Position numbers and translations under genes: made by a program
Assembly (NCBI RefSeq): GCF_001194135.2
Contig: NC_068986.1
Coordinates: forward strand, 83,763,790 to 83,827,789
DNA length: 64,000 bases
DNA from: Octopus bimaculoides
Taxonomy: Eukaryota
Direction of reading: 5' to 3'
Notes under the pieces: model-generated
Database searches by the model: none
The model's input: only the letters and a program-made list of their open reading frames with translations
Told to the model about the DNA's origin: nothing
Part shown: piece after piece, positions 1 through 58,930 of the stretch
Position numbering within the stretch: the stretch's first letter is position 1
How the letters are laid out: each line of letters opens with the position of its first letter

Positions 1-1860
1 TGACCATGCATTCTTTTCTTTACCCATCTATTTTCAGTTTCATTCGTTTTCAATTTCTTGTTTAGTGCAATCTTTCATCGTACACAAGCCTGACCTTCCT
101 ACTTCTAATGTTAGTGGTTCCGTGGCATTTTTACATAGCATGCTATGTTGTTTTCTTCTGTTCTAATGCTGTGTTCACATTCAATAAGTCCTCTTCCCCC
201 TCTTTTTCTTGGTACATACAGTCTGTCTGTGTCACTTTTTGGGTGGAGTGACCCACATCTAGTTAGCAACTTCCTTGCCTTTCTGTCTAAGCTGTTTAGT
301 TCGTCTACTGTCCATGCAATTACCCCTGCTTCATATCTAAGGAGTGAAACCTCCCGGGTGTTAATGGCTTTGATCTTATTCCATCCATTTGATTTTGACT
401 TAAGGATCAGTCTCAGTCTGCGTAAGTACTGCACCTTAAATTTTTCTGTCATTTCTTTCTCCATTTATTTATCCATTTCCAAAATCCCCAAGTACTTATA
501 GCTCATCTCTTTTATCTGCTTCATAACCTCCCCTGACAGTATCGTTAGTCCATCCATACATTTGATTTTGCCTCTCTTCAATACTAACACACCACACTTT
601 CTCAGTCCGAACTCCATTCTGATATCAGCACTGAAGGTATACACTGTATCAATGAGGGAACTGACTTGGGCTTCATCTTTACCATAAAGTTTGAGGTCAT
701 CCATGAATAAGAAGTGGTTGACATTTTATTGGCAGCTTTTGAATACATACCCAGCTTTTGCTTTCCTCAGAATCAGTATCAGTGGTATCAAGCTCAGTAC
801 AAAGATCAGTGGGGACAGGCAGTCCCCTTGGAAGATGCCCCTCCTAATTTCTACTGTCCCTAAACTTCTTCTGTATGCTGTCAGGTCCGTCCTCCAATTT
901 GCCATACTTTTTCCAAGCAATCACTCAACATTTGATGCAATCCCAAACAGGTTCATACACTCCATAATCCAAGAATGTGCTGTCATATTGAATGCCTTAC
1001 GATAGTAAATCCATGACATGGCTAAGTTACTTTTCCTCCTCTTGTAGTCTCTGAGTACAGTTTTATCTATCAGGAGTTGATCCTTGGTACCTCTGCACTT
1101 ACGCTTGCAACCCTTCTGCTCATGTGGCAGGACTCCATTTTTTTCTAGATGTTCGTACATTGACTCTGCGAGTATTCCAGTCAATAACTTCCACATAAGT
1201 GGCCAACAGGATACCGGCCTGTAATTGTCTACCGCATTGCCTTTTTCGATGTTTTTCAGGCACAGCACTGCCCTACCCAATGTCAATCACTCTGGTGTTA
1301 CTTGGTCGGCATTTAACAAGGTGTTGAGTTGCGCAACTATTTGTGCATGACATTCACCATATCTTTTGATCCAGTAGCCTTGAANNNNNNNNNNNNNNNN
1401 NNNNNNNNNNNNNNNNNNNNNNNNNNNNNNNNNNNNNNNNNNNNNNNNNNNNNNNNNNNNNNNNNNNNNNNNNNNNNNNNNNNNNNNNNNNNNNNNNNNN
1501 NNNNNNNNNNNNNNNNNNNNNNNNNNNNNNNNNNNNNNNNNNNNNNNNNNNNNNNNNNNNNNNGATCTACTTTCAATTACCTATTCTGGTGGTAAACCTT
1601 CATTCTTTGGTCGTATCTTACCATCTTTGCTTTTTTTGCAATGAGGTGCTGTTTCAGTTCCTCCACTACTACTTTCAGGCCCTTTCTTTCAATATTATAC
1701 TTCCTTTTCAGCGCCCTGTATTTTTGTTTGCTTTTAAGCTCCCCTTTCTCTTTTTGGTCTAACACAGAGATTTCCTTTGAGAGTATGTCTGATCCCTGCC
1801 TGGATTCTTCTTTTCCACCATGGATCTTTTCTTTTGTCACTCCTATTGTCTCTTTTTCTT
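1..1860 (-). mobile_element. R4/Dong-clade non-LTR retrotransposon, frameshifted RT region (gap 1385-1563, 3' end outside window)
   Basis: Successive minus-strand ORFs give RT motifs in order: [96 protein letters not shown], and W-x-K-x-x-MHG at the window start. This motif set is typical of the R4/Dong clade. Confidence 0.9.
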
Positions 1861-17519: not shown

Positions 17520-17920
17520 CTGTGAGCTTGATGCTGTTAACGATCTGTTTAATCTGTGGCTGGTCAAGGCCTGCAAGAAAGACGGGAGAAGATTCCAGAA
17601 GAAAGCAGGAGAAGATTCCAGAGGGTTGATGAACTGGGTAGAAAAGACTTGGCACAGTGGCTAGTGTGGAGCTGAGGTGGTGTAGATACACCAAGGATGA
17701 CAAGTAGTGGATAGACAAGTGGGTAGGGGGTACCTGAATGGAGTAGGTATAACATCAGCCTGCTGCAAAGAATAGTGGCCATCATAGTAAGAATAGAAAA
17801 AACAGAGGCAACTGTATGCATGTGAACCAAAGGTTGTGTGCTTATATTTCTTTTACTGGTTCTAACTATTGGATTGTGACCATACTGGTGCTCTGTCTTC
17901 AAGAGCCTTTTAATCAGTCA
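17520..17920 (-). mobile_element. 3' end of an L2/CR1/Jockey-like LINE ORF2 (decayed)
   Basis: HTSHCAKSFLPSSSTLWNLL and PVFLAGLDQPQIKQIVNSIKL in overlapping minus frames. Confidence 0.6.
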
Positions 17921-20990: not shown

Positions 20991-21168
20991 ACTTTGTCAC
21001 TCATGTCCTTCTCCATGCAGTACTATTGTAATTGGATGATACCATTCTTTCTAATGAGATTTATAGGGAATTGGAAGTTCAGTAGCTTATATTATATCAA
21101 TGTTTTCAAGGCAAAAGCTGTACATTATTTACAATTGATGGATATTTGTCCTCATCTTGTTTGTTGTT

Positions 21169-21214
21169 AACACAATGTTTCGGCTGATATACCCTGCAGC
21201 CTTCATCAGGTGTC
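21169..21214 (-). ncRNA. Minimal type I hammerhead ribozyme motif (one stem III mismatch)
   Basis: Reverse complement: GACAC CTGATGA A GGCTG cagggtatat CAGCC GAAA CATT GTGTT. Confidence 0.75.
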
Positions 21215-21339
21215 TTTAGGAAATTTCGAACCTGGGTTCTCATTCCTAAAGTATTTTTCAATGATGCTGCTGCTGCTGCTGCTACTGTTGCTGTTGCTGT
21301 TGTTGTTGTTGTTGTTGTTATTATTATTATTATTCTGGT

Positions 21340-21411
21340 CACTGCCTAGAATCAAACTCGGAATCTTGGGGTTAGTAGCCCGCGCTCTTAACCACTATGC
21401 CATATGCCCGT
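21340..21411 (-). promoter_or_regulatory. tRNA-derived Pol III internal promoter (A and B boxes) of copy 1
   Basis: Minus strand TGGCATAGTGGTTAAG (A box) and GAGTTTGATTC (B box), anticodon-arm-like GGG CTACTAA CCC; mirrored on plus strand at 21412-21478. Confidence 0.75.
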
Positions 21412-21569
21412 GGGCATAGTGGTTAAGAGCATGGGCTACTAACCCCAAGATTCCAAGTTCGATTCTAGGCAGTGACCTGAATAATAATAATGATGATAAT
21501 AATAATAATAATAACAACAGCATCGAAAAATACCTTAGGAATGAAAGCCCAGGTTCAAAATTTCCCAAA

Positions 21570-21616
21570 GACACCTGATGAAGGCTGGAGGGTATATCAG
21601 CCGAAAAGGTTGTGTT
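21570..21616 (+). ncRNA. Minimal type I hammerhead ribozyme motif (stem III altered)
   Basis: GACAC CTGATGA A GGCTG gagggtatat CAGCC GAAA AGGTT GTGTT. Confidence 0.7.
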
Positions 21617-22247
21617 AACAACAAACAAGATGAGGACAAATATCCGTCAATTGTAAATAATGTAAATAATGTACATAATTCCTCATCTCTTAAATATAGA
21701 ACTGCAAAAGCTGTAGTTTTAAGCTATGATATAGACAAGCAAAAATAAATAGATAATGCTTATTTCTGTAACTATCTGGGGTATAATACAATTACCAAAT
21801 GTTTGTTGATTTGCAGTGTCCAGTTAAAGCCATATAAAGTGTATATTGTTGAAAAAGATGAACTTGACAACGTTAACCTAGATACACTATAGATACATTA
21901 CACAGGCCAACAAAGGAACCATAGATGATCACTGAACCTGATAAACATGTCAGCAAAATCTCCTTCAGGTCAGATTCTACTATCTTAAATAAGTAATGAA
22001 CACATTAGATTAATGTATCCTAAAAAGACAGTATGGCTACAACTGAAATACCTTTGTTCATTAGTTTGTTCATTCAGGTTTTAATTAAACAACAATAAAA
22101 CCATAGATACACTATATTAAAATAAAGAGTAATTGCTCAATCATTCAACTACGGTAGTAGTTGAATAATATTCTTAAGGCCACAATTTACTCACAGGCAG
22201 CATCTTCAGAGCTTTGTCGCTAATTCAGTTCTAAACTGAATTGAAAA

Positions 22248-24342: not shown

Positions 24343-25429
24343 GATTACATGGGAAAATGTGAGCAAGAGGAATAATATTCTTAAGATTATAAACCTGGAA
24401 AAGTACGGGACAAGTTATTATACTTGGAAAAGTTCAGGACAACTTATTACATCTGGTAAAGTACAGAACAAGACAATTTTTACTTAAAATATTGCAGCTA
24501 AGGATAAAATTTGAATATCAAAAATTATTTGATTTTAATTTACAAAGTAACATTATAATTAAAAAAGTACCATCATTTTGTTAAAATATTGACACACTAG
24601 AATACTTAAAAAATGAGAGCCAGAAGTACCAATATAGCTAAAGTTTTATGCAAAGCAGAATAGTATATATGGTAGGCAAATTCATTATGTAAAATATAGG
24701 CATTGGGTCAAAACTAAAAATGTGAAGACTTGGCAATAACTCAAGCAAATTTTACTGTGAATTTGTTGTTATAGGTAGATTTTACTGTAATATATAACTA
24801 GTTTTTTTATTATTCTATTTATTGTACTAACTNNNNNNNNNNAGTTTTATGCAAAGCAGAATAGTATATATGGTAGGCAAATTCATTATGTAAAATATAG
24901 GCATTGGGTCAAAACTAAAAATGTGAAGACTTGGCAATAACTCAAGCAAATTTTACTGTGAATTTGTTGTTATAGGTAGATTTTACTGTAATATATAACT
25001 AGTTTTTTTATTATTCTATTTATTGTACTAACTAATTATGTACTACTATTATTTTTTATAACCTATTTTCAAATTTCTAATTATTAATTAATAATTTAAA
25101 AAATGCATTTTTTTTAAAGTGCAAAAATATTTTAATCAAGTTATTTTTAATTTTTAATAGAAGTAACAAGTAATAAAAAATAGAAGTAATAACTTGTAAT
25201 AAAATTTTTAGTTTTAATAAAAGCTAATATTTTCTAAATCTAAACATTTTATTTGAAATTTTATCCTCTTCTGCAATATTTTAAGTACAAATTTCTTTGT
25301 TCTGTACTTTACCAGATGTAATAACTTGTCCTGAACTTTTCCAAGTGTAATAACTTGTCCTGTACTTTTCCAGGTTTATAATCTGAAGAATATTACTTTT
25401 CTTGCTCGCATTTTCCCATGTAATAAGTC
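24343..25429. mobile_element. Foldback/MITE with about 170-bp TIRs containing 29-bp subrepeats
   Basis: 24344-24514 is the reverse complement of 25252-25424; three TGG(A/T)AAAGT(A/T)C..GACAA.TTATTA units per arm; candidate TSD CATG. Confidence 0.8.
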
Positions 25430-34769: not shown

Positions 34770-34930
34770 GCTTGAAGGCACCAGCATCAATTAATTGTAC
34801 TGGTATTATATTTTGTTGACCCCTGAAAGATGAAAAGCAAAGTTGACCACAGCAGGATTTGAACTCAGAATGAAAAAACTCATAATTAAATACCATAGTG
34901 CATTTTGTCCAAGTTCTAATGATTCTACCA
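34770..34930 (-). mobile_element. SINE family A fragment
   Basis: GACCCCTGAAAGATGAAAAGCAAAGTTGACC..ATTTGAACTCAGAAT..CATTTTGTCC..GATTCTACCA. Confidence 0.7.
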
Positions 34931-35339
34931 ATAAACCGACTTGCTGGAATCTTTTTTCTTCCATACCTCTTAAATAAATGTCTGGTAGATCTTGTCTTGA
35001 AGAAGCTGAACTTCATATATCAAAATTTATTCAGTTTTCCAACCTATTGGTTATTCAAAAATCAGGTTATTGACCTTTGCAAGGCTGTTTTTTTTTTTGA
35101 CTGATATTTTTGCCATTCCTTAATAATAATAATAATAACACCAGTCACTCTTGTGATAAATAAGTACATTAATAATAATATCATCAACATCATCAGTTAA
35201 CAGACAAAGACATATTGCGTAAAAGGTGTCTACAAACAGTTCCTTCTCATTTACATCATTATTATCATCATTACAGTGATCTAGATATTTCAGCCAGTGC
35301 ATCAGCCTCAAAGCATACTGGCCCATCATCAAAGATGGC

Positions 35340-36290: not shown

Positions 36291-36600
36291 TATAGTTTAA
36301 TACCTGCCCTCACTTCCTTTTGGACAGCTGTTAGATCATAAGCCATTTGAACTCTTTTGTGCTATCCATGGCCACTTACTTATCCAAGGGCTCAGCTAGA
36401 TTTGCATTTGTTTTGTCTTGTATTTTATTGTCACCGGAAGGATGAAAAGCAAAGTTAACCACAGCAACATTTGAACTCAGAATGTAAAAGTTCATTACTA
36501 AATTCAATAGTATAGTTCTATATTTAAGAGATGAGGAATTACGTACATTATTTACATTATTTACATTTGATGGATATTTGTCCTCATCTTGTTTGTTGTT

Positions 36601-36643
36601 AACGTGTTTCGGCTGATATACCCTCCAGCCTTCATCAGGTGTC
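36601..36643 (-). ncRNA. Hammerhead motif (3' stem I strand deleted)
   Basis: Reverse complement GACAC CTGATGA A GGCTG gagggtatat CAGCC GAAA CACGTT. Confidence 0.65.
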
Positions 36644-36851
36644 TTGGGGAAATTTCAAACCTGGGTTCTCATTCCTAAGGTTTATAAGCCCTAGAATTCA
36701 CTCCATAATTGCCCACGGGCATATGGTGTAGTGGTTAAGAGCATGGGCCACTAACCCCAAGATTCTGAGTTCGATAAAAATAATGATAATAATAATGATA
36801 ATAATAATAATAATAACATTGAAAAATACCTTAGATTTGAAATTTCCCCAA

Positions 36852-36897
36852 GACACCTGATGACGGCTAGAGGGTATATCAGCTGAAACATTGTGTT
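36852..36897 (+). ncRNA. Hammerhead motif (stem II substitutions)
   Basis: GACAC CTGATGA C GGCTA gagggtatat CAGCT GAAA CATT GTGTT. Confidence 0.65.
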
Positions 36898-36984
36898 ACC
36901 AACAAACAAGATGAGGACAAATATCTGTCAAATGTAAATAATGTAAATTCAGTAGGGTATTTTGTCTGACACTCTAATGGTTCT

Positions 36985-37025
<41 letters not shown>

Positions 37026-50065: not shown

Positions 50066-50990
50066 CATCATCATCATCATTTAACGTCCACTTTCCATGC
50101 TAGCATGGATTGGATGATTTGACTGAGGACTGGCGAAGCAGATAGTTGCACCAGGCTCCAATCTGATCTGGCAGTGCTTCTACAGCTGGATGCCCTTCCT
50201 AACGCCAGCCACTCCGAGAGTGTAGTGGGTGCTTTTACGAGCCACCGGCACGAGAGCCAGTCAGGCCATGCTCAAATGGTGTTTTTTACATGCCACCTGC
50301 ACGGAAGCCAGTCAGCTGCTCTGGCAGTGATCACACTCGGATGGTACTCTTAGTGCTCCACTGGCATGGGTGCCAGTCATCGAATTTGCGAATTTGATTT
50401 GATTTCAATTTCATTTGCTTCAACAGGACTTCACAAGCAGAGTTTAGTGTCCAATGAAGGAAAGGTACGTATAAGTGGGCTCTTACACCCCTGGCTAGGC
50501 CACAGGTTATGGTCTCACTTGGCTTGCTGTGTCTTCTCACGCATTGCATATTTCCAAAGGTTTCGATCACTAGTCGTTGCCCCGATGAGGCCTAATATTT
50601 GAAGGTTGTGCTTCACCACTTCATCCCAGGTCTTCCTGGGTCTACCTCTTCCACACGTTCCCTCAACCACTAGGGTGTGGCACTTTTTCACACAGCTATC
50701 CTCATCCATTCTCACCACATGACCATACCAGTGCAGTCGTCTCTCTTGCACACCACATCTGATGCTTCTTAGGTTCAACTTTTCTCTCAAGATACTTACA
50801 CTCTGTCTAGTATGCACACTGACATTACACATCCATCGGAGAATACTGGCTTCATTCCTTGCGAGCCTACACATGTCCTCAGTAGTCATGGCCCATGTTT
50901 CACTGCCATGTAGCATGGCTGTTCATATGCATGCATCATACAGTCTAACTTTTACTCTGAGTTAGAGGCCCTTTGTCACCAGCAGAGATA
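50066..50990 (-). mobile_element. RTE-clade LINE, 5'-truncated: ORF C-terminus (50515-50990), family D 3' UTR and (ATG)n tail
   Basis: MLHGSETWAMT..ERRLHWYGHVVRMDEDSCVKKC..EGTCGRGRPRKTWDEVV; contiguous UTR ending CCATGCTAGCATGGAAAGTGGACGTTAAATGATG. Confidence 0.9.
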
Positions 50991-53019: not shown

Positions 53020-53285
53020 ATGGCTGTTGCCAGTACCGCCTGACTGGCCTTCGTAGGATTTTCGAGCGAGATCGTTGCCAGTGCCCCTGGACTGGCTCTT
53101 GTGCGGGTGGCACATGAAATACACCATTTTGAGCGTGGCTGTTGCCAGTACCGCCTGACTGGCCTTCGTGCGAGTGACACGTAAAAGCACCCACTACACT
53201 CTCTGAGTGGTTGGCGTTAGGAAGGGCATCCAGCTGTAGAAACTCTGCCAAATTAGATTGGAGCCTGGTGTTGCCATCCGGATTC
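53020..53285 (+). mobile_element. RTE 3' UTR fragment (family D) with internal tandem repeats
   Basis: TGGCTGTTGCCAGTACCGCCTGACTGGCC repeated; GGCGTTAGGAAGGGCATCCAGCTGTAGAAAC. Confidence 0.8.
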
Positions 53286-54214: not shown

Positions 54215-54415
54215 CGTACCTGTGGCCAGTGCCTCCTGACTGGCTCCTGTTCTGGTGGCACATAAAATGCATCATCCGAACGTGGTCGATGCCAGTGCCC
54301 CCTGACTGGCCCCCATGCCAGTAGCATGTAAAAAGCACCATCTGAATGTGGTTGATGCCAGCTGCATTTGACTGGCTCCCATGACGGTGGCACGTAAAAA
54401 GCACCATTCAAATGG
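54215..54415 (+). mobile_element. Family D tandem-repeat segment
   Basis: GCCAGTGCC.CCTGACTGGC and GGCAC.TAAAAAGCACCAT units. Confidence 0.7.
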
Positions 54416-55500
54416 TGGAATTGTTCTAACAATTTAAAATGCCTTTCATAACAAGTCCATGTTTCACAAGAATGCAACAGAGATGGTAAGACAAATGATT
54501 TGTAAAGAGCCATCTTTGTATTGTTATATATTGTATGTTGCTGGCACCAAACGCGTGACTCCAAACCACCAAATGCTTTTGCTGCCCTTTGAATTTGCAG
54601 CTGTATTTCTGTATCAAGATTTCCATCCTTTTGTACAGAGCTTCCAAGGTGGATGAATGAATCGACAACCTCAAGTTACTTACCCTTAACAAAAATTTTA
54701 GGGGTTTACAAACAGCACCACATGCAGGTTGATGCAATACAACTTTTTTTTTTTCAAGTTGATGGTCAAGCCAAAATCCTCACAAGCTGAGTCAAATGCA
54801 GATACAAGAGATTGCAAACCTGTTTCAGAATGACTGACAAGATCTCAATCGTCAGCATATAAAAGTTCCCTAATGAGTGAAATAAAAACCTTCATTTTGA
54901 ATTTCAGTCTGGTCAGATTAAAAACATTCTCTGCTGTTCAATATTTTATGTAAATACTCTTCTCAGAGTTTTGAAAAGCATGTGACAACACAACAGCAAA
55001 GTATATTGCAAAGAGGGTGGGTACATCAAGGTTTTCTTGCTTTATTCCATTTTCCATGGCAAAAGATTCAGAGATCTTACCACCAAAGTTAACTCTAGCT
55101 TTCATATCTTGATGCAAAGCCCTAGTCATGTTTACAAATTTTTCTGGGCAACCTATTTTCCTTAGAATTAGCCACAGAGCTTTTTGATTAGCAGTATTGA
55201 ATGCTTTTCTCAAATCAACAAAGTAATGGTATAGAGCAAGATTCTGTTCAATGCACTTTTCTTGCAATTGTCTGATAGTAAAGATACAATCAGCTGTGCC
55301 CCTGGAGGAACGAAAACAACACGGAAACTCAGACACTATATTTGGTACTACGAAGGTATTTAAACGGTCTGACAAAATGCAGGCAAGTACCTTTTTAACC
55401 ACAGACAAAAGTGAAATCCCACGAAAATTACCACACAGACCCTTTGCCTCTGATTTATACAAGGAGACTAAAATGGCATCAATCCAGTTTTGAGACACTT
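54416..55500 (-). mobile_element. RTE-BovB-like LINE RT region, pseudogenised
   Basis: GNFRGISLLSVVKKVL, FRSSRGTADCIFTIRQLQEKCIEQN, FVDLRKAF, GCPEKFV, ENGIKQ..PTLFAIYF; later YKSFVLPSLLHSCETWTCYERHFKLLEQFH. Confidence 0.9.
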
Positions 55501-56427: not shown

Positions 56428-56639
56428 CTGAAATACAGTTAACTAAAATGTTATGGTGTCTCATTTTCTTTTACATGAGTTAATAACTAAAAATAAATTT
56501 CTCATACACACATATATGCACACATACATACATATATATGTATGTGTGCATATATGTGTGTATGAGAAATTTATGTTTAGTTATCAGCTCATGTAAAAGA
56601 AAATGAGACATCATAACATCCTAATTAACTGTATTTCAG
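56428..56639. repeat. 212-bp near-perfect palindrome (foldback MITE or long hairpin)
   Basis: CTGAAATACAGTTAA..GTCTCATTTTCTTTTACATGAG..AAATTTCTCATACACACATATATGCACAC mirrored with few mismatches and a minimal loop. Confidence 0.9.
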
Positions 56640-58137: not shown

Positions 58138-58930
58138 ATCCTTTCTATTAAAGGCACAATGCCAAAAATTTTGCAGGAGGGGACTAGTCAATTACGTTAA
58201 CCTCAGTGTTTCATCATCATCATCATCATCATCATTGTTTAACGTCTGCCTTCCATGCTAGCATGGGTTGGACGATTTGACTGAGGACTGGTGAAACCGG
58301 ATGGCAACACCAGGCTCCAATCTAATTTGGCAGAGTTTCTACAGCTGGATGCCTTTCCTAACGCCAACCACTCAGAGAGTGTAGTGGGTGCTCTTACATG
58401 TCACCCGCACGAAGGCCAGTCAGGCGGTACTGGCAACGGCCACGCTCGAAATGGTGTCTTTTATGTGCCACCCGCACAAAAGCTAGTCCAGGGGCACTGG
58501 CAACGATCTCGCTCGAAAACCCTACGAAGGCCAGTCAGGCGGCACTGGCAACGGTCTTAATTTATTGATCCTGAAAGGATGATAGGCAAAGTCAATCTTG
58601 GCAGAATTTGAACTCAGAATGTAAAAACAGATGAAATGCTGCTAAGCATTTTGCTCAATGTACTAGGGATTCTGCCAGCTTGTCTCCTTTAACCAAACAA
58701 TAATAGTTCTTACTAATATAGGCACAAGGCCTGAAATATTTCATGGACCCCATTGCTTAACTGGTACTTATTTTATCATCATTGAAAGGATGAAAGACAA
58801 AGTCAACCTTGGTGAACTTTGAACTCAGAATGTAAGAACAGATGAACTGCTATTAAGATTTTGGCCAGTATGTTAATGAATCTGCCAGCTCACCACCTTA
58901 ATAAAAACAATAATAATAATAAAAATAATG

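Follow-up and report, generated by a model that had tools for sequence, protein, structure and literature searches.

A stretch of 64,000 nucleotides from Octopus bimaculoides (NCBI RefSeq assembly GCF_001194135.2, contig NC_068986.1, positions 83,763,790 to 83,827,789 of the forward strand; hereafter the window, in whose coordinates all positions are given unless another contig is named) carries two insertions of a short non-coding mobile element. Both are head-to-head inverted dimers enclosed by a single target-site duplication (TSD), and their arms combine a tRNA-like head with a hammerhead ribozyme motif and a tail that is extended at one end only. The insertion at 21123-21703 (locus 1) and the family to which it belongs are a real mobile element. 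Its best explanation is, in our judgement, probably a family of tRNA-headed short interspersed elements (SINEs) that depends on Penelope-like elements (PLEs) for its movement.

Two inverted dimers in the window

Locus 1 can be read directly in the window sequence as a non-coding head-to-head inverted dimer. Its inverted-repeat arms (21121-21401 and 21413-21664) are 86-95% complementary in three ungapped blocks, and the interval 21123-21703 is flanked exactly by the two copies of a perfect 12-bp direct repeat (GCAAAAGCTGTA; 21111-21122 and 21704-21715). Arm alignment resolves each arm, from the centre outwards, into a tRNA-like head, an (AAT/AAC/AGC)n tract, a body, a minimal type I hammerhead and an AT-rich tail. 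The inverted arms, the direct repeat and the order of the modules had all been noted in an earlier reading of the sequence alone (the original prediction), and they are found here as it placed them; what that reading missed is the inequality of the arms, i.e. 41 extra bases (21663-21703) at the outer end of the right arm. The head of this long-tail arm lacks 7 nt (GGGCATA^GTGG). There is no open reading frame (ORF) within the element. The arms of one locus differ by a Jukes-Cantor distance of 0.073; our own extrapolation from the dating of O. vulgaris repeats (PMC13282606) suggests an insertion age of about 10 million years. The features of locus 1 are as follows.

21111-21122, no strand: left TSD (GCAAAAGCTGTA), a perfect 12-bp match to 21704-21715
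21123-21409, minus strand: short-tail arm (sequence, arm alignment and inverted-repeat blocks), with tail 21123-21168, hammerhead 21169-21214, body ~21215-21263, (AAT/AAC/AGC)n tract ~21264-21336 and complete head 21337-21409
21169-21214, minus strand: hammerhead of the left arm, GACAC CUGAUGA A GGCUG-loop-CAGCC GAAA CA UU GUGUU (descriptor and core pattern)
21337-21409, minus strand: tRNA-like head of the left arm (GGGCATATGGCATAGTGG...CAGTGACC), with an exact A box TGGCATAGTGG at 21392-21402 and the B-box-like GAGTTTGATTC
21410-21411, no strand: 2-nt spacer GT between the heads (sequence)
21412-21703, plus strand: long-tail arm (sequence and arm alignment), with head 21412-21477, trinucleotide tract 21478-21522, body 21523-21569, hammerhead 21570-21616, shared tail 21617-21662 and extension 21663-21703
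21570-21616, plus strand: hammerhead of the right arm, in which the position of helix III reads GAAA AGG UU (descriptor and core pattern)
21663-21703, plus strand: 41-nt tail extension, present in one arm only (arm alignment, folds, and the PLE 'tail' of PMC8557442 and PMC3846280)
21704-21715, no strand: right TSD (GCAAAAGCTGTA; 12-bp direct repeat)

A BLAST search of one arm against the window revealed a second insertion at 36511-36943 (locus 2), which is absent from the original prediction. It is also a head-to-head dimer, lies in the opposite orientation and holds the remaining two of the four matches to the hammerhead core. In its long-tail arm the head is rearranged and partly deleted (GGGCAATTATGGAGTGAATTCTAGGGC), and the trinucleotide tract is missing. 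The clearest evidence of movement comes from a paralogue of the repeat that hosts this insertion: at 34780-34990, the 12-bp target is present once (TAAATACCATAG) within an uninterrupted match to both flanks of locus 2. Hence, the whole dimer arrived as one insertion with a 12-bp TSD, and the mobility of locus 2 is proven by this unfilled paralogous site. The host repeat itself occurs in two dispersed copies, about 82% identical (34780-34990, and 36392-36511 plus 36944-37010).

34780-34990, plus strand: unfilled site, paralogue of the repeat hosting locus 2 (self-BLAST and three-way alignment)
36499-36510, no strand: left TSD of locus 2 (TAAATTCAATAG; flank comparison and three-way alignment)
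36511-36714, minus strand: long-tail arm (BLAST and arm alignment), with a 44-nt extension at 36511-36554 and a hammerhead at ~36601-36643 that has lost 3 nt from the 3' strand of helix I
36717-36943, plus strand: short-tail arm (BLAST, arm alignment and core pattern), with a head whose start is complete (GGGCATATGGTGTAGTGG...), an (AAT)n tract, a hammerhead at 36852-36897 and the end ...TGTAAATAATG, as in the short arm of locus 1
36944-36955, no strand: right TSD of locus 2 (TAAATTCAGTAG), identical to the left copy at 11 of 12 positions

The two loci share the same asymmetry. In both, the head of the short-tail arm is complete (GGGCATATGG...) and the arm ends with ...TGTAAATAATG at the TSD, while the long-tail arm reaches further, by 41 nt in locus 1 and by 44 nt in locus 2, to ...TCTCTTAAATATAGAACT(ATA). 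According to the folds, the extension contributes the 3' strand of a 9-bp stem (AGAUGAGGA/UCCUCAUCU), which means that the short arm stops within the loop of that stem; the folding z-scores of the 3' module are unremarkable (-1.4 and -0.2). The spacer between the heads is identical in both loci as well: GCCC-GT/AC-GGGC, with AC on the plus strand of locus 2.

Relatives outside the window and the architecture of insertion

When 1.84 billion representative proteins were searched with a profile of sense-frame translations, 185 matched, and the contigs behind these matches yielded related loci; the long profile matches P0017 and P0037 are unrelated repeat proteins and were discarded. In a word-indexed protein search, the sense-frame translation is 81% identical to a spurious Octopus bimaculoides protein (A0A0L8FV75), and the antisense-frame peptide has no match. 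As an exact pattern, the 23-26-nt tail motif has 0 matches in viral, prokaryotic-genome and metagenome collections, and strings of the element, sought in full texts, occur only in an irrelevant context.

Relatives of the octopus type (group A) come from Logan assemblies of the runs SRR11869384-94. Among them is the solo monomer L010, which is of full length, from the head through an AT-rich tract, the body and the hammerhead (GAAACGUU) to the long tail; L004 is an independent dimer with a TSD of 10-12 bp (ATAAATAGTA) and the same asymmetry of short and long tails. L001 is a dimer of two 5'-truncated arms that both have the long tail, and L007 is a solo copy, also 5'-truncated. Group B derives from another genome (ENA ERZ21867824 and NCBI GCA_052426985.1), with more than 2,800 ORF-level matches; its DNA has no other repeats in common with the window. 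In its locus L003, an 8-bp TSD (CTTAAAAA) encloses an inverted arm together with a direct tandem array. The inverted arm consists of a different head, with motifs that merely resemble A and B boxes, followed by body, hammerhead and short tail; the array consists of 2.7 tandem hammerhead-tail units of 129 nt, with a one-sided extension of ~35 nt at its end. Identity to the octopus module is 80% over the hammerhead and the 30 nt that follow it. That the same terminal module stands behind two different heads with box motifs of the RNA polymerase III (Pol III) type suggests recurrent capture of such heads by PLE terminal modules. The hammerhead-tail module of group B also forms retrozyme-like tandems. 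A third, more diverged hammerhead-tail variant (CTGATGA-A-AGTTG...CGGTC-GAAACGTT) lies at the edge of the ENA locus L003 (9-93, plus strand), about 2 kb upstream of a LINE-like reverse transcriptase (RT) ORF, LINE standing for long interspersed element.

Taken together, these copies define an architecture. The inverted, adjacent head-to-head copy is seen in both window loci and in L001, L004 and L003; a one-sided tail extension is present in locus 1 (41 nt), locus 2 (44 nt) and L003 (~35 nt); and the TSD surrounds the whole complex in locus 1 and locus 2 (12 bp each), L004 (10-12 bp) and L003 (8 bp). Published PLE insertions have an inverted copy next to the direct one and, optionally, a tail of 30-40 bp at one end (PMC8557442), and in the PLEs of Adineta vaga the tail measures 31 bp and the TSDs 8-10 bp (PMC3846280). 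This comparison supports an insertion architecture as described for PLEs, and not for LINE-driven SINEs, in line with the PLE-like inverted copy of the original prediction.

An ordinary LINE-dependent tRNA SINE is nevertheless an explanation to be considered; in that case, the hammerhead would be an inert relic or a coincidence, and the dimers would have arisen by twin priming or adjacent insertion. It can appeal to the abundance of SINEs, which account for 11.6% of the O. vulgaris genome and rank second in abundance among its orders of transposable elements, after LINEs (PMC13282606, PMC8967140), to the LINE RT fragments within the window and to the fact that Rfam detects no hammerhead. Yet a single TSD encloses the whole dimer and none surrounds single arms, and the identical junction and the arm asymmetry return in independent insertions. 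Twin priming, as known from L1 biology, inverts a segment without duplicating it. Furthermore, the 3' end ...TCTCTTAAATATAGAACT(ATA) has no A-run, poly(A) or simple repeat, BLAST finds the tail in no other window sequence, LINE fragments included, and a hammerhead core with the PLE-specific extra base is kept in a diverged family, with one compensatory pair. On this balance, we consider a LINE-dependent origin improbable.

We regard as highly improbable that the palindrome is a foldback element, i.e. a DNA transposon similar to miniature inverted-repeat transposable elements, with SINE-derived arms and moved by cut-and-paste or a similar DNA route. Such an origin would suit a composite within one TSD whose centre and arm-specific head rearrangement are inherited as a unit. 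The termini, however, are not inverted repeats, given the 41-44 unmatched bases at one end, and the TSD length varies from 8 to 12 bp; the solo monomer L010, the 5'-truncated copies L001 and L007 and the partial tandem of L003 are marks of reverse transcription, and derived substitutions are common to both arms of locus 1, as expected from one template copied twice.

The tandem units raise the question of a true non-LTR (long terminal repeat) retrozyme, in which the hammerheads of a tandem transcript would excise a unit RNA and its circle would serve as the template for reverse transcription. The homologous 129-nt head-to-tail units of L003 and of many ORF-level relatives agree with this, and animal retrozymes have been linked to PLEs (PMC7229834; bioRxiv 10.64898/2026.07.22.740005). 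The window loci do not: their hammerheads lie on opposite strands, no copy is tandem, and the ends of the insertions, with the head at 5' and the tail at 3', are defined and not permuted. Because each transcript would thus contain one sense ribozyme, no unit-length RNA could be excised and circularised. The retrozyme label of the original prediction misfits the window copies for these reasons, and we think a retrozyme quite improbable here.

The hammerhead and the tRNA-like head

Both arms of locus 1 contain the string GACAC-CUGAUGA-A-GGCUG..CAGCC-GAAA-..UU-GUGUU, as previously noted. A descriptor of the minimal type I hammerhead matches exactly two sites in the 64 kb, both in locus 1 (0.005 per window in mononucleotide shuffles), and a 32-nt core pattern has four matches in the window, one per arm, compared with 0 in 100 dinucleotide shuffles. 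The catalytic boxes CUGANGA and GAAA are intact and in type I order in all four window copies, and GAAA is almost invariant across 15 aligned family members.

In the minimal hammerheads of PLEs, helix I has 4-5 bp, helix II is long, G10.1-C11.1 is conserved as a pair, one base stays unpaired between positions 9 and 10.1, and helix III is lacking, while a palindrome at 15.2-16.2 permits dimers; in Schistosoma, pairs of such motifs occur 100-700 bp apart on opposite strands (Cervera & de la Pena 2014, PMC4209133). Both arms of locus 1 have a helix I of 5 bp (GACAC/GUGUU) and a helix II (GGCUG/CAGCC) with G10.1-C11.1; the short arm of locus 2 (36852-36897) has G.U at 10.1-11.1 and A.C at 10.5-11.5. 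An unpaired base between A9 and G10.1 is found as A in three window copies and as C in one, and as A in the group B family. Helix II contains a compensatory change, U-A in the octopus family and C-G in the related family, with U.G in one copy and never an unpaired state. There is no helix III: the window copies read A-CA-U (three) or A-AGG-U (one), neither of which is palindromic. In the 15 aligned members, from the window and outside, positions 15.2/16.2 are CG in seven, UG in two and other combinations in six; this is the pattern of a decaying CpG, which points to an ancestral ACGU palindrome lost in the window copies. Judged trait by trait against PMC4209133, assignment to the Penelope-type minimal kind, as originally predicted, is supported except for the palindrome in the window copies. 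Self-cleavage of these copies is doubtful, their 15.2/16.2 being C,A in place of the palindromic C,G of relatives, and they are probably dead.

What is less clear-cut is the head. An A box TGGCATAGTGG is exact in the left arm of locus 1 only, the right arm reading GGGCATAGTGG, and the B boxes (left GAGTTTGATTC, right AAGTTCGATTC) depart from the consensus once per arm. The box strings of the original prediction are therefore consensus forms, which hold for the A box of the left arm and not for the right A box or either B box. The B box (AGTTCGATTC or GAGTTTGATTC) follows 43-44 nt downstream of the A box, a tRNA-like spacing; single boxes are not rare, with 0.67 (A) and 0.28 (B) expected per window. 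A second A-box match at 17650 is isolated and was set aside as a chance match. The alignment to the tRNA covariance model (positions 8/9-63) takes in the D, anticodon (loop CUACUAA) and T arms. Judged by sequence, the head seems tRNA-like merely at the level usual for SINEs, and transcription by Pol III is predicted from the A and B boxes only. The linkage of head and hammerhead, also proposed earlier, recurs in three of the four window arms according to the arm alignment, and the solo monomer L010 extends it beyond the window.

A run of at least four T follows within 0-19 nt of the outer end of the short arm in three of the four dimers examined (window 21095-21122, minus strand; window 36944-36975; L003 9695-9712, minus strand). 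Such a run could act as a Pol III terminator; the sample is small.

In the model we favour, the family would consist of non-autonomous retroelements with a monomer of ~300 nt and five modules: a tRNA-derived head with A and B boxes, a variable trinucleotide tract, a short body, a minimal hammerhead and a tail of ~90 nt, whose last 41 nt would close a stem-loop. The head would drive Pol III transcription of the monomer. The 3' module would be derived from, or mimic, the pseudo-LTR of a hammerhead-bearing, endonuclease-containing PLE and, to judge from the architecture, would be read in trans by the RT and GIY-YIG endonuclease of such an element. Integration at a staggered break would create the observed TSDs of 8-12 bp and often leave an inverted second copy, head-to-head, in such a way that a single end retains the 41-nt tail extension; both the inverted copy and the one-sided tail would arise during the unusual integration of the PLE enzyme. 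The hammerhead would have been inherited from the PLE module, and its ACGU palindrome at 15.1-16.1 would have permitted cleavage as a dimer. Octopus genomes hold Penelope families, 30 of which were recently active in O. vulgaris (PMC13282606), and PLE pseudo-LTRs have been identified as the source of hammerhead repeats in vertebrates (bioRxiv 10.64898/2026.07.22.740005).

Several results weigh against PLE dependence or against parts of this model. The ten window ORFs scanned against Pfam include no PLE RT or GIY-YIG gene and only two LINE-like RVT_1 fragments, and no PLE was found near the relatives, the RT of L003 being LINE/RTE-like. With no ORF in the element and no PLE gene in the window, the element could only be a non-autonomous dependant. 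The Rfam hammerhead models, which the original prediction had named as a check, give no match at the gathering threshold for the window or at E<=10 for 801 nt and for 75 nt, and none for the relatives; this miss is expected for a ribozyme without helix III, and membership in the minimal class consequently rests on the descriptor and on literature criteria. Overall covariation in the hammerhead is no better than in column shuffles, and even intact minimal hammerheads of PLEs cleave poorly in vitro (PMC4209133). The heads reach 16.3 and 12 bits in the tRNA covariance model, against a threshold of 29 bits (left head, 21337-21409: 12 bits, E=3.6, model positions 8-63), and ARAGORN predicts no tRNA. 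The sense strand is free of TTTT, which is not significant (P 0.4-0.7 per arm); since chance accounts for it so readily, we rejected the missing terminator as evidence of Pol III transcription. The last of these points, the passing of arm-specific features between independent insertions, is unexplained by one monomer RNA copied twice, and deserves closer consideration.

The window fragments of LINE type lie at 921-1286 (minus strand; RVT_1 E=5.6e-05) and 54938-55498 (minus strand; RVT_1 E=1.1e-12), and neither is PLE-like. An ORF at 50515-50916 (minus strand) resembles the C-terminal region of a LINE by eye; it has no Pfam match and is not PLE-like either.

The long-tail arms of locus 2 (GGGCAATTATGGAGTGAAT) and L004 (cGGtAATTATGGAtTGAAc) have a common rearranged and partly deleted head, with three shared indels relative to the standard one, whereas their short-tail arms start with the standard head, and the flanks and TSDs differ between the two. 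A rearranged head that is common to insertions with different flanks and TSDs indicates that the centre of the dimer was inherited as a unit. In locus 1, conversely, two derived transversions in body and tail (AAAGACAC, TCAATTG) are common to both arms and absent from all other copies, so that a single template supplied the outer parts of both arms. One explanation could be that the inverted dimer is itself the heritable unit, moving by way of an RNA template that extends across the junction, with the outer part then copied by fold-back; we attach a rather low likelihood to it. The template would start antisense inside one arm and run through the other arm to its long tail; reverse transcription would then fold back, self-prime and rebuild the outer part of the first arm. 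If true, this would account for the inherited 2-nt spacer and head rearrangement, for the shared new substitutions and for the constant end of the short arm, and the 300-nt element would become a tractable model for the unsolved transposition cycle of PLEs. An antisense template with self-priming has been proposed for PLEs by Arkhipova et al. 2013 (PMC3846280), and the end of the short arm at ACATT, 28 nt past TATATTTAA, fits this idea. Two other schemes were rejected: a simple snap-back of the full cDNA cannot yield a one-sided tail, and a transcript from the antisense TATA/ACATT alone cannot regenerate the tail extension.

On the antisense strand of the extension (21663-21703), TATATTTAA lies 28 nt upstream of an initiator-like ACATT, where the short arm ends; in L003 (10345-10379), TAAATTT lies ~34 nt upstream of TCATT. 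The pair TATATTTAA/ACATT may be an antisense core promoter or a chance occurrence in AT-rich DNA.

Known systems and implications

Sm-alpha-type SINEs, minimal hammerheads of PLEs in thousands of copies, non-autonomous PLE derivatives and PLE-derived retrozymes are already known. Sm-alpha of Schistosoma mansoni (Ferbeyre et al. 1998, as cited in PMC4209133 and PMC4918200), named as a precedent in the original prediction, is indeed described in PMC4918200 as a short non-coding dispersed repeat with tRNA-related sequence and a type I hammerhead. Compared by description, its hammerhead is canonical, with helix III and loop contacts (PMC4209133), in contrast to the minimal octopus form, and the passages on Sm-alpha in PMC4209133 and PMC4918200 report no head-to-head dimers with a one-sided tail. 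Closer in ribozyme structure are the minimal hammerheads in PLE pseudo-LTRs (PMC4209133), with which the octopus motif shares the helix traits, the ACGU sequence as the commonest state of the family and the occurrence in opposite-strand pairs 100-700 bp apart; unlike them, it stands behind a tRNA-like head in an ORF-less element of 300 nt, and its window copies have C,A at 15.2/16.2.

The pLTR-flanked captures (pLTR, pseudo-LTR) of Adineta vaga (PMC3846280) and elements such as MRC1 of Chlamys (PMC8557442) likewise lack an RT and endonuclease of their own and are mobilised in trans, and these non-autonomous PLE derivatives have inverted or tandem pLTRs, a one-sided tail of 31-40 bp and TSDs of 8-10 bp (PMC3846280, PMC8557442). 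They differ by having no tRNA-like Pol III head, and those of Chlamys and Naiad are mostly without canonical hammerheads. The non-LTR retrozymes of animals (Cervera & de la Pena 2020, PMC7229834; Li et al. 2026, preprint) are also non-coding, contain a hammerhead and have been proposed to depend on PLEs, and the 129-nt tandems of the L003 family resemble them; the octopus copies, however, are non-tandem, with defined ends and a promoter-like head, and cannot form circles by double self-cleavage. The LINE-dependent tRNA SINEs of octopus (tRNA-Core, tRNA-Deu; PMC13282606, PMC8967140) share the tRNA-derived head, the small size and the high abundance, but the element described here ends without a LINE-type tail or A-run, and its insertion is PLE-like. 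None of the papers found, the octopus annotations PMC13282606 and PMC8967140 included, mentions hammerheads in cephalopod repeats (Repbase and Dfam not covered). What our family adds is the signature of PLE insertion in very compact form.

Other repeats of the window deserve mention. Direct and inverted copies of a short repeat, 76-95% identical, lie between 50 and 58 kb (53026-53285 versus 58552-58293, 50066-50339, 54222-54407 and 58224-58515); with the translation motif GAFHVPPAWEPV, they probably represent another abundant SINE-like family. A direct duplication of 191 bp with 100% identity (24642-24832 and 24843-25033, 10 bp apart) is either a very recent tandem or an assembly artefact, and a near-perfect palindrome of 212 bp (56428-56639; 92%) surrounds a (CA/TA)n tract and is unrelated in sequence to the element. 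N runs at 16.5-16.8, 22.4-22.9, 26.4-26.9, 39.3-40.1 and 53.3-54.2 kb (2,724 N in total) are bordered by microsatellites, as in short-read scaffolds, and gap-adjacent repeats may be incomplete.

SINEs are one of the largest repeat classes of octopus, mostly annotated as unclassified or as LINE-type tRNA SINEs (PMC13282606, PMC8967140). If some of them depend on PLEs, the pairing of autonomous elements and their parasites in cephalopods needs revision. Transcripts that contain such inverted dimers would furthermore readily supply long double-stranded RNA. The integration route of PLEs and the function of their hammerheads are stated open questions (PMC8557442, PMC7229834, PMC4209133, PMC3846280), and an element of 300 nt that reproduces the inverted copy and the one-sided tail of PLE insertions as well as their partial tandems would offer a compact system in which both the integration of PLEs and the role of the hammerhead may be studied.

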